From Octopus bimaculoides (taxonomy: Eukaryota): a stretch of DNA of 63,525 nucleotides. Position 1 is the stretch's first letter. Each line of letters opens with the position of its first letter. A program made the position numbers and the translations under genes. Shown piece by piece: positions 40,666-42,129 of the stretch. The notes beneath the pieces were generated by a model, which worked only from the letters and a program-made list of their open reading frames with translations, was not told where the DNA came from and did not search any database. The stretch is taken from assembly GCF_001194135.2 (NCBI RefSeq), contig NC_068990.1:61764769-61828293 (forward strand), written 5' to 3'.

Positions 40666-42129
40666 TCATTGAGTGTTAGGTTCCAGGTGCCAGACTAAAT
40701 GTGCTGTGAATTCCAGCCTGTTGCTCAGTTTTTTCGAGCATTTCTTACAGGAGAATTCATTGAGACCATCTGTATAATGTAAACTATTGTGAAGCATACT
40801 CATAGCCAGATCTTCGAACCAGATACCACAAGACATACAATGATGGTATCTTTTTCCTGGGAATGGCTGTGGGTAAGACTCAGAAGAATGTGGGGAATTT
40901 CGTTGCAGTGAAAAGGATGGTGGTATCGAATCTGTGTGTTGTTGCAAAAGAGAGGCAATCGTGCCTCCGTTTGTAGTCGTGGTATTTGTTGTAGTCGTTT
41001 GCAAAGTATGTGCGTATGGAGTTTGCATCAGTGGAGAGCTTGCGGTGAACCGCTCTTCAGACAAAGAAGAGTTCTCCTCTCCACGTTCACCCAAATCGTC
41101 GTTCCTTTCCTCTCCTGAGTAGTTAGGCGTCATATACATGCCTACGCCATTGTTGATTGGCTCTGTTTTGATGTATGTTAAGTTGTGGTTTGTCACAGGA
41201 GTGGATTCAGTGGGGGTGTAACAGGAGGACAGGGTGGTGTTGACGTCTGGCTTCGTGCTTAAGTTCAGTGCATTGTTTTCATAATCGTCGCACATTCTCT
41301 GATCCAGGAATCTGTCTGGATTGTCAAGCCTTATCATACAATGAGGAGGCTGTTCGTTGGAGGCTGGCCGGCTTTCATCTGGAAGGATGCGTACAGGTGT
41401 TAGTCTGTTGCTGCCTGTTGCACTCATACCAAAACAGGCAATGGAAAGAGCATTTACATTCTCGTCGGTATTATGATCCATCTTAAATTCTTGCTCGATA
41501 TCATCACTTACAAGTGTTGTCGTACTGACAGCATTCTGGTGCATTGTATCCTGGCTGTTGTTGTTACTGTTATTGCTGTTGCTGTTGATGTTGCCAACAC
41601 CACCACCACCACCACCACCACCACCGACTCCACCATTACCTCCACCACTGCCGTGGTGAACTCTCTTGTGTCTAGCTAAGTGGTCCTCCTCCCGAAATGT
41701 CTCTCCGCATAAATCGCACATGTGCAAGGTTTCGATACCATGGCCTTGAAGGTGGGTGTAGAGTGTGGCTGGTTTGCTGAAGCGTAGCCCACACAGTCGG
41801 CACTGATTGCGCTGCCGTTGGGGTTGATGCACCTTCATGTGCTGCTTAACATGGTCGGAACGCGTAAAACGTCGCTCACACAGGCTGCAGGCATACGGTC
41901 TCTCACCGCTGTGTACGCGAACGTGACGCCGCAGCTTGGAGGGCGTGCGATACGACTTGCCGCACACGAAGCAGCTGTGCGGTGGATTTCCCCGATTGTG
42001 TGTTTCAATGTGAGCATCCATATCATCCGTAGATTCAAACTGCTGGCCACAGTTGCGACACATGTATTTTGTCACCACTTGTACGGTGTACTTAGAGCTT
42101 GTAGGTGCAATTTTGGAGGCTGTATTCAT
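40666..42129 (-). CDS. C2H2 zinc-finger transcription factor, 487 aa: 5 N-terminal fingers plus C-terminal Ikaros/Hunchback/TRPS1-like finger pair
   Basis: Uninterrupted 1464-nt ORF with higher GC than its flanks. Five CxxC-x12-HxxxH fingers (aa 22-158, SGERPY linker between fingers 2 and 3) and two C-terminal fingers (aa 431-481). An in-frame TAA lies 5 codons upstream of the ATG, so the ATG at 42129 is the likely start. Confidence 0.95.
   Translation of the reverse strand: MNTASKIAPTSSKYTVQVVTKYMCRNCGQQFESTDDMDAHIETHNRGNPPHSCFVCGKSYRTPSKLRRHVRVHSGERPYACSLCERRFTRSDHVKQHMKVHQPQRQRNQCRLCGLRFSKPATLYTHLQGHGIETLHMCDLCGETFREEDHLARHKRVHHGSGGGNGGVGGGGGGGGGVGNINSNSNNSNNNSQDTMHQNAVSTTTLVSDDIEQEFKMDHNTDENVNALSIACFGMSATGSNRLTPVRILPDESRPASNEQPPHCMIRLDNPDRFLDQRMCDDYENNALNLSTKPDVNTTLSSCYTPTESTPVTNHNLTYIKTEPINNGVGMYMTPNYSGEERNDDLGERGEENSSLSEERFTASSPLMQTPYAHTLQTTTTNTTTTNGGTIASLLQQHTDSIPPSFSLQRNSPHSSESYPQPFPGKRYHHCMSCGIWFEDLAMSMLHNSLHYTDGLNEFSCKKCSKKLSNRLEFTAHLVWHLEPNTQ

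Follow-up and report, generated by a model that had tools for sequence, protein, structure and literature searches.

In a 63,525-nucleotide stretch of the Octopus bimaculoides genome (contig NC_068990.1, positions 61,764,769 to 61,828,293 of the forward strand; hereafter, the window), we identified a gene for a zinc finger protein of 487 amino acids, in which five C2H2 fingers clustered near the N terminus (residues 24-158) are followed, far downstream, by an isolated pair of fingers at the extreme C terminus (residues 431-481). The C-terminal pair appears to be of the dimerization zinc finger (DZF) type known from the Ikaros family, and it is combined with an N-terminal array that is not that of Ikaros. 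The gene is one member of a mollusc-wide family, to be called the 5+2 family after its finger layout, and its product is probably a transcription factor that binds specific DNA sequences and follows the Hunchback/Ikaros-like plan, within this mollusc-specific family. The assignment of the C-terminal pair is supported by family-level profiles, by an intermediate family and by function-defining residues, and not by pairwise similarity. The coding sequence and the two fingers are located as follows (evidence in brackets):

40666..42129, minus strand: complete coding sequence in one exon (open reading frame of 487 codons plus TGA; match to protein P0001 of other octopuses; ratio of non-synonymous to synonymous substitutions, dN/dS)
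40777..40839, minus strand: zinc finger 6, the first DZF finger, residues 431-451, CMSCGIWFEDLAMSMLHNSLH (alanine-scan residues, motif)
40687..40749, minus strand: zinc finger 7, the second DZF finger, residues 461-481, CKKCSKKLSNRLEFTAHLVWH (motif, alanine-scan residues, no change in Argonauta)

We built a profile from 24 mollusc 5+2 pairs and compared it with 1.84 billion representative proteins. As a background for all comparisons below, we used 2174 adjacent finger pairs (ordinary pairs) from proteins chosen out of these 1.84 billion as matching the same 5+2 profile; this preselection makes it a stringent background. The yardstick that counts most is functional. A published alanine scan covering each of the 48 residues in IKAROS ZF5 and ZF6 identified 13 non-ligand residues needed for homodimerization, i.e., F471, D473, M476, I479, N493, M494, G496, R502, Y503, F505, I509, R511 and G512 (PMC12954321). 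In the octopus protein, F438, D440, M443 and L446 correspond to IKAROS F471, D473, M476 and I479, so that none of the four ZF5 residues is lost and three are identical; in fixed register, R471, L472, F474 and L478 of the second finger correspond to IKAROS R502, Y503, F505 and I509. Altogether, the pair is identical at 5 of the 13 positions, and identical or replaced by a hydrophobic residue at 8, as compared to averages of 2.2 and 4.2, respectively, in the ordinary pairs. Five identities were reached by 10 out of 2161 ordinary pairs and the higher count of eight by a single one out of 2161, which is the same DZF-like pair that carries the first of the two motifs described below. The human IKZF1 sequence used here agrees with every residue name given in the alanine scan and with the fragments we retrieved.

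Profile scores point in the same direction. Apart from the family itself, single matches to the 5+2 profile confined to the C-terminal stretch (52-77 bits) were given by a second mollusc family with three N-terminal fingers (to be called the 3+2 family) and by one 4+2 protein, the list being otherwise dominated by long poly-finger proteins, in which numerous weak matches add up. When a mixed DZF alignment served as the query of a homology search, six short candidates passed the word filter, four real Ikaros-family DZF fragments among them, and these four scored 39.1, 37.2, 32.0 and 27.0 bits under the mollusc-only profile, under which the 2174 ordinary pairs had a mean of 15.7 bits (standard deviation 6.5; maximum 35.4). 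With an Ikaros-only profile, the mean scores were 33.3 bits for the 5+2 family and 37.8 bits for the 3+2 family, versus 15.2 bits (standard deviation 6.3) for the ordinary pairs. Two diagnostic motifs, defined post hoc, separate the groups further: the finger-1 motif F/Y4-D6-[MLI]9-[ILVM]12 occurs in one of the 2174 ordinary pairs, itself C-terminal and DZF-like, and the finger-2 motif [DN][RK][hydrophobic][ED]F (positions 6-10) in none, while both are present in 66 out of 66 5+2 pairs, in 26 out of 26 pairs of the 3+2 family and others, and in all four Ikaros pairs. Finger 7 of the octopus protein (N470-R471-L472-E473-F474) fits the latter motif.

When the octopus pair alone was used as the query, it retrieved mollusc 3+2 DZFs at 41-56 bits, and the 3+2 DZFs score 36-41 bits under the Ikaros profile; by sequence, the 3+2 family is the intermediate that links the octopus pair and the Ikaros DZFs. 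Its pair reads IHHC.HCNIFF.D.TM.HLH.SLH...PF.CPSC...CQDRIEF.FH.VWHVKYPHTIPNY. Independently of us, annotation pipelines have arrived at names such as Eos-like, ztf-16-like, Ikaros-like and Pegasus. The initial annotation of this stretch, made from the letters alone, had claimed a DZF-type pair, and the profile rank, the diagnostic motifs and the 8 out of 13 alanine-scan residues bear this out. The strings it quoted, CMSCGIWFEDLAMSMLHNSLH and FSCKKCSKKLSNRLEFTAHLVWH, occur verbatim in the open reading frame (40687-40848 encodes residues 428-481), while the Ikaros strings it gave, FLDHVMYTIHMGCH and DRYEFSSHI, are matched by protein P0263 and by the residue names in PMC12954321.

Several observations weigh against this assignment. 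Both diagnostic motifs were defined with both sequence sets already in view, for which reason the alanine-scan yardstick counts for more. Within the 5+2 family, the pair of the window gene's orthogroup is the most diverged one (NEFSC for DPFTC, SNRLEF for GNRLEF and HYTDG for HSAD). Under the Ikaros-only profile, the octopus pair scores 25.7 bits, a value equalled or bettered by 110 of the 2174 ordinary pairs and, as a single query, it finds after the 3+2 family a mixture of ordinary pairs with TRPS1. The equivalents of IKAROS N493, M494, G496, R511 and G512 (5 out of the 13) differ; the last finger ends in H-x3-H versus H-x5-H in Ikaros and TRPS1, and the inter-finger linker counts nine residues versus seven in Ikaros. 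HHalign gave 98.6% (E 1e-15) for the family pair against Ikaros DZFs and 98.7% against ordinary pairs; being dominated by the common C2H2 scaffold, it does not discriminate and was dropped as a test. The AlphaFold2 monomer model leaves the two fingers without one rigid unit (predicted template modelling score, pTM, 0.46). PDB sequence searches with the C-terminal pair, alone or as a profile, returned generic DNA-binding fingers and IKZF ZF1-3 constructs and no DZF structure. Moreover, a Foldseek search of the PDB with the DZF model gave nothing below an E value of 0.03 (template modelling scores, 0.33-0.41), and Pfam is without a DZF model. Dimerization of the octopus protein is predicted from its DZF-type residues.

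Such observations feed the main alternative, according to which the C-terminal fingers form another module for binding nucleic acids, the protein being bipartite like BCL11A and the DZF likeness of the pair convergent or functionally meaningless. Both fingers are indeed regular C2H2 beta-beta-alpha units, HHalign does not set the pair apart from DNA-binding pairs, and by its similarity to vertebrate DZFs the pair is not separable from ordinary ones; bipartite arrays with a long linker do exist, as in BCL11A, where it spans ~300 residues (PMC12006351). What speaks against this explanation is that the usual base-contact positions in the helix of finger 6, as read from the sequence, are D, A, M and L, i.e., mostly hydrophobic, and that the linker between the two fingers is not TGEKP-like. 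Furthermore, the IKAROS dimerization residues are the very ones conserved across ~90 mollusc sequences, and the conservation (with NRLEF.AH..WH invariant) extends beyond what a recognition helix needs. We consider a second binding module unlikely, and prefer to read the pair as a DZF.

The C-x2-C-x12-H-x3-H pattern occurs seven times in the octopus protein, starting at residues 24, 53, 81, 110, 138, 431 and 461 (in P0001, the last two fingers start two residues earlier). An alignment of 26 family sequences shows no variation at the zinc ligands of any of the seven fingers: C24/C27/H40/H44, C53/C56/H69/H73, C81/C84/H97/H101, C110/C113/H126/H130 and C138/C141/H154/H158 in the N-terminal array, and C431/C434/H447/H451 and C461/C464/H477/H481 in the C-terminal pair. 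Run with this alignment, AlphaFold2 predicted five beta-beta-alpha fingers between residues 22 and 160 (predicted local distance difference test, pLDDT, 70-94) and two more between residues 429 and 482 (pLDDT 59-80), with residues 162-419 disordered. Pfam hits above threshold were to C2H2-type models exclusively, and GATA, BTB, KRAB and SET domains were not found in the Pfam scan of the protein. FYVE and ZNF451 hits on the C-terminal pair fell below the curated cut-offs and were disregarded. The fingers of the N-terminal array are:

41998..42060, minus strand: zinc finger 1, residues 24-44, C-x2-C-x12-H-x3-H (invariant ligands; pLDDT 74-88)
41911..41973, minus strand: zinc finger 2, residues 53-73, helix RTPSKLRRH (nearly invariant across molluscs)
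41827..41889, minus strand: zinc finger 3, residues 81-101, helix TRSDHVKQH, with an EGR/WT1/KLF-like RSDH (alignment, PDB matches)
41740..41802, minus strand: zinc finger 4, residues 110-130 (pattern, alignment, AlphaFold2)
41656..41718, minus strand: zinc finger 5, residues 138-158 (pattern, alignment, AlphaFold2)

Fingers 2 and 3, the only ones joined by a canonical linker (HSGERPYAC), are near-invariant across molluscs (...RTPSKLQRHVRVHSGERPYAC..C.RRFTRSDHVKQH...), and R90, S91, D92, H93, K95 and Q96 of finger 3 are invariant in the family alignment; the RSDH helix noticed in the initial annotation is there, and reads FTRSDHVKQH. Searched against PDB sequences, fingers 1-5 matched generic arrays (ZFP568, CTCF, Aart, PRDM9, ZBTB24, ZBTB7A, EGR1, WT1 and KLF4), the EGR1, WT1 and KLF4 chains aligning over fingers 2-3. 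By the simple recognition code, finger 3 presents R, D, H and Q at positions -1, 2, 3 and 6, and finger 2 presents T, S, K and R, which weakly suggests that fingers 2-3 may favour a G-rich core site.

The best 60 PDB matches to fingers 1-5 included no chain of Ikaros, Helios or Aiolos, although such chains were there to be found; together with the generic nature of the matches, this agrees with the earlier view that the N-terminal fingers are not those of Ikaros. It also bears on whether the gene could be a true orthologue of the vertebrate Ikaros family, specifically of IKZF4 (Eos), as its NCBI name “zinc finger protein Eos-like” and the resemblance of its C-terminal pair to Ikaros DZFs would have it. 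The N-terminal array counts five fingers versus four or three in IKZF proteins, no IKZF protein appeared among the 120 matches listed in the full-length search, and the full-length relatives that bear a species name are molluscs only. The Ikaros family is moreover said to have arisen in a deuterostome ancestor, judging by the title of Kastner et al. 2024, which counts against such orthology too. We regard IKZF orthology as close to refuted.

That same full-length search returned ~60 proteins with five N-terminal fingers, a long variable linker and the C-terminal pair, which reads approximately C.HC.IWFED.AMS.LHNSLHSAD..DPFTCRKC.KKLGNRLEFTAHLVWHLEP. All those bearing a species name are uncharacterised mollusc proteins, from bivalves (Mytilus, Argopecten, Pecten, Dreissena, Mercenaria, Mya, Sinanodonta, Saccostrea and others), gastropods (Haliotis, Patella, Gigantopelta, Babylonia and Nucella), a chiton (Liolophura) and cephalopods (Octopus and Argonauta); non-mollusc hits concerned the N-terminal fingers only, at ~30-40% identity, and were without the C-terminal pair. 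The octopus protein has all the invariant columns of the N-terminal core (...SKL.RH.R.H.GE.P...C..C...F.RSDH.KQH...) as well as the C-terminal core (...F.ED...LH..LH...C..C.K...NRLEF.AH..WHL). No published description of either the 5+2 or the 3+2 family was found in the literature on mollusc, octopus and oyster Ikaros-like genes. Of the initial proposal of a distinct DZF-bearing factor, both halves hold, the DZF-type pair as well as the array unlike that of Ikaros, and no characterised bilaterian orthologue with the same architecture emerged. The gene is no octopus peculiarity, as the family is mollusc-wide, and automatic annotation had already named it “Eos-like”.

Cephalopods hold at least five paralogue groups of the family, as judged by a neighbour-joining tree without bootstraps. 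Four of these have five N-terminal fingers (the window gene, “ztf-16-like”, “EVI1-like” and “ZNF148-like”), while the fifth group has four and goes under the name “myosin-G heavy chain-like”. In Argonauta hians, three 5+2 paralogues sit on one scaffold, at 1.635, 1.755 and 2.708 Mb, inside an interval of 1.07 Mb, the scaffolds concerned in this species being BAAFZT010000028.1 (loci L004, L011 and L013) and BAAFZT010000007.1 (loci L005 and L012); in O. sinensis and O. vulgaris, going by contigs of identical length, at least two paralogues apparently share one chromosome. For two of the three Argonauta paralogues, a second scaffold also encodes an identical protein, suggesting a haplotig or a duplicated segment of the assembly. 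Elsewhere in the databases, 5+2 proteins are called Eos-like, ZNF836-like, PRDM10-like, ztf-16-like, EVI1-A-like, myosin-G heavy chain-like, ZNF148, suppressor of hairy wing-like or sal-like. These are artefacts of best-hit naming, and those such as Eos-like, EVI1-like, myosin-G-like and ZNF148 mislead orthology-based analyses; the family assignment corrects them.

The 3+2 genes go under similarly diverse names: “DNA-binding protein Ikaros-like”, “ikaros family zinc finger protein-like” and “Zinc finger protein Pegasus”, but also zag-1-like, Krueppel homolog 1-like and VEZF1-like. In nine molluscs at the least (Haliotis cracherodii, Gigantopelta, Babylonia, Liolophura, Pecten maximus, Mercenaria, Sinanodonta, Mya and Mactra), contigs of identical length indicate that a 5+2 and a 3+2 gene lie on one and the same chromosome or scaffold and, on Argonauta scaffold BAAFZT010000007.1 (loci L005, L012 and L014), the 3+2 gene lies ~5.8-6.8 Mb from two 5+2 genes. 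This co-location hints at an old local duplication. DZF-like C-terminal pairs were also seen on other arrays, in a multi-finger protein of 1049 residues (P0166, residues 995-1049) and in a 4+2 protein of 389 residues (P0231, residues 335-389). The P0231 pair scores 43.5 bits under the Ikaros profile, more than any 3+2 pair and more than all 5+2 pairs except that of chiton protein P0048 (45.0 bits).

Hunchback is the known protostome gene with C-terminal DZF fingers, and the window gene could in principle be a divergent paralogue of it. A provisional Hunchback DZF sequence scores 29.4 bits under the family profile, placing it in the top 2% of pairs. The second DZF finger of Drosophila Hunchback, in a likewise provisional sequence, is without the [DN][RK]x[ED]F that mollusc and Ikaros pairs have in common, and the conserved middle fingers of Hunchback (MF1-4) apparently have nothing specific in common with fingers 1-5. 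We consider it very improbable that the window gene is such a paralogue.

The gene itself is intact. An uninterrupted open reading frame of 487 codons runs from ATG to TGA on the minus strand (window 40666..42129), coinciding with a local peak in G+C content of 0.39, versus 0.24-0.34 in the adjoining blocks. Protein P0001 (485 residues), which Octopus vulgaris (OX597823.1, ~47.56 Mb) and O. sinensis (CM016867.1, ~43.38 Mb) have in common and which NCBI calls Eos-like, shows 99% identity with the octopus protein at 100% query coverage; the window coding sequence differs from the identical coding sequences of those two species at 19 aligned nucleotides (3 amino acids), and specifies a protein two residues longer (487 versus 485). 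Compared to the Argonauta hians orthologue, dN/dS is 0.047 overall, 0.008 for fingers 1-5 and 0.073 for the linker, while the C-terminal pair has no codon out of 58 with an amino acid change at a synonymous divergence (dS) of 0.35. These values indicate strong purifying selection on the octopus 5+2 gene.

A single exon holds the entire coding sequence, as in the Argonauta orthologue and in one more distant family member, the loci of which were read. A splice acceptor lies upstream of the coding sequence:

42165..42190, minus strand: polypyrimidine tract and AG splice acceptor, with the AG at 42167-42166 and the coding exon starting at 42165 (sequence, conservation)

This acceptor lies 36 bases 5′ of the ATG, with an in-frame TAA and TGA between the two, and the genomes of O. 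vulgaris and Argonauta retain the tract plus GCAG|GCA. From a more distant octopod, a transcript-like Logan contig of 2.3 kb (L008) is similar 3′ of the acceptor and loses all similarity exactly there, which fits a spliced exon in the 5′ untranslated region; a search of the window for that exon brought up nothing credible. With its purifying selection, its orthologues and this transcript-like contig, the gene is real, constrained and expressed.

These results refute another explanation, by which the open reading frame would be there by chance, a pseudogene, or an ordinary member of the expanded tandem arrays. Octopus genomes do contain very many C2H2 genes, hundreds of them in expanded tandem arrays, and the window is rich in repeats. 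Set against this are the dN/dS of 0.047, a DZF unchanged across octopod genera, orthologues throughout the molluscs, the spliced transcript-like contig, and fingers limited to 5+2 in a non-tandem spacing.

Between the two groups of fingers lies the following region:

40873..41646, minus strand: disordered linker, residues 162-419, with Gly/Asn/Thr low-complexity runs (pLDDT below 50 save one small island)
41425..41448, minus strand: linker motif 1, residues 228-235, LSIACFGM; family G[LI]AKF[SG]L (family conservation)
41212..41235, minus strand: linker motif 2, residues 299-306, TLSSCYTP; family [MI]SIS.CY[ST]L (family conservation)
41125..41172, minus strand: linker motif 3, residues 320-335, IKTEPINNGVGMYMTP; family T..DG..M[YF][IV].P (family conservation)

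The three motifs are kept from bivalves to cephalopods, while the remainder of the linker is unalignable; having them in common, the 5+2 proteins are orthologous or paralogous over their whole length. In motif 1, A231 and F233 are nearly invariant and coincide with the island of higher pLDDT (64-68), and IKTE inside motif 3 matches the psi-K-x-E sumoylation consensus, and is a putative sumoylation site on that ground. Octopods also have an ALNLS (residues 287-291) with a loose likeness to PxDLS, the motif bound by CtBP, and V[MI]DLS[MV].K is present in many 3+2 sequences. Gly-rich and Asn/Ser-rich runs stand right after finger 5 (window 41560-41650, minus strand; residues 160-190), and, at a later point of the linker, the Argonauta orthologue has an additional poly-Gly insert. 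Judging by this insert and by the two-residue difference among octopuses, the length of the low-complexity tracts varies among close relatives.

How such a protein would work can be outlined from the known DZF proteins. The five-finger array would bind DNA at a G-rich site, with fingers 2-3 as its core, as these form the sole pair with a canonical linker and are near-invariant across molluscs, and the short conserved motifs of the ~260-residue disordered linker would probably be sites where cofactors dock or where the protein is modified. The C-terminal pair of fingers would not read DNA but act jointly as a DZF module, through which the protein may pair with itself and probably with cephalopod paralogues bearing the same contact residues. 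Paired proteins could bring two DNA-binding arrays onto paired sites cooperatively, as in the Ikaros family. DZF pairing is reportedly selective, which makes the 5+2 paralogues likelier partners than Hunchback. DNA binding, dimerization and partner choice are here inferred.

On a larger scale, molluscs may have built a combinatorial dimer network of their own, independent of but analogous to the vertebrate Ikaros network, by placing an ancient DZF module on new arrays (5+2 and 3+2). The expansion of the cephalopod 5+2 genes to at least five groups, with near-identical DZFs, would make heterodimers possible; the Eos-like group, whose DZF has diverged, could have private or altered partners. We put this forward tentatively, as a speculation that may well prove wrong. 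DZF fingers are among the few well-documented cases of C2H2 fingers that mediate selective protein pairing and, to our knowledge, only a handful of genes carry them: those of the Ikaros family, Hunchback, TRPS1 and the Hunchback/Ikaros-like genes of nematodes. With a DZF-type pair on an unrelated five-finger array, the mollusc 5+2 family widens the known range of the module. It also offers natural variants for the study of pairing specificity, in which the four IKAROS ZF5 contact residues are kept and part of those in ZF6 are replaced. In cephalopods, a small set of regulators (at least five paralogue groups plus the 3+2 gene) may act as homo- or heterodimers, apart from the C2H2 genes in tandem arrays.

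The rest of the window is AT-rich (G+C content 0.18-0.42). The open reading frame at 40666..42129 is the sole exception among the long ones in the 63.5-kb window, the others being read-throughs of microsatellites or N runs, and no further credible coding exon of at least 110 amino acids was found elsewhere in it. An Rfam scan of the window gave no match. At least four diverged copies of a ~150-bp repeat resembling a short interspersed element (SINE) are present, each adjoining (TA)n/(CA)n microsatellites, and reading through them yields several spurious open reading frames of 100-150 amino acids that specify similar peptides (...LLSVS..Q..S.GF..PEA...); likewise, the N-run gaps yield long X-filled pseudo-reading frames.

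42780-42930, plus strand: SINE-like repeat copy
53790-53960, minus strand: SINE-like repeat copy
57720-57900, minus strand: SINE-like repeat copy
30700-30880, minus strand: SINE-like repeat copy
3369-3980, 6283-6699, 17867-18758, 20951-21525, 38675-39170 and 45800-46363: assembly gaps (N runs), flanked by microsatellites

Amongst known systems, TRPS1 shares with the octopus protein the C-terminal Ikaros-type pair, and a provisional sequence of its DZF reaches 37.4 bits with the family profile, more than any of the 2174 ordinary pairs. The octopus protein is much shorter, has another N-terminal array and is without a GATA-type finger in the Pfam scan; given the absence of that finger, it is not TRPS1. 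The closest relative of its C-terminal pair is found in the mollusc 3+2 family (e.g., Haliotis P0155, Physella P0258, Saccostrea P0275 and Argonauta P0289), which is mollusc-wide as well, has the ...EF..H.VWH ending in common with the 5+2 pair and, at the one locus read (Argonauta), an intronless coding sequence. The 3+2 proteins differ by three N-terminal fingers of unrelated sequence, by a C-terminal extension (VKYPHTIPNY) and by other linker motifs.

The Hunchback/Ikaros-like (HIL) layout combines an N-terminal or central DNA-binding cluster with a C-terminal protein-contact pair (bioRxiv 10.1101/2022.06.20.496913), and its protostome representatives are Hunchback/HBL-1 and C. elegans ZTF-16 and EHN-3 (Large & Mathies 2010, as cited in bioRxiv 10.1101/2022.06.20.496913). 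The octopus protein has this defining layout, and NCBI names one cephalopod paralogue “ztf-16-like”. ZTF-16, EHN-3 and Hunchback were not among the full-length matches listed, and the comparison with them is by description of the layout only; the 5+2 family, in contrast to the HIL proteins, is confined to molluscs among species-named proteins.

With the Ikaros family (IKZF1-5: Ikaros, Helios, Aiolos, Eos and Pegasus), the octopus protein has in common a DNA-binding cluster of fingers near the N terminus and, beyond a long linker, the C-terminal pair, in which the first DZF finger carries F-x-D-x2-M-x2-[IL] and the second [DN][RK][hydrophobic][ED]F, together with the 8 out of 13 homodimerization residues. 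Its five N-terminal fingers are unrelated to IKZF ZF1-4 (three in Pegasus), its family is molluscan only and its coding sequence occupies a single exon; by its N-terminal fingers, the spacing of its DZF and its molluscan distribution, it is not a member of the Ikaros family proper. The 5+2 proteins constitute a new family of the known Hunchback/Ikaros-like design, half-recognised already by automatic naming, and would be no surprise to the specialist.

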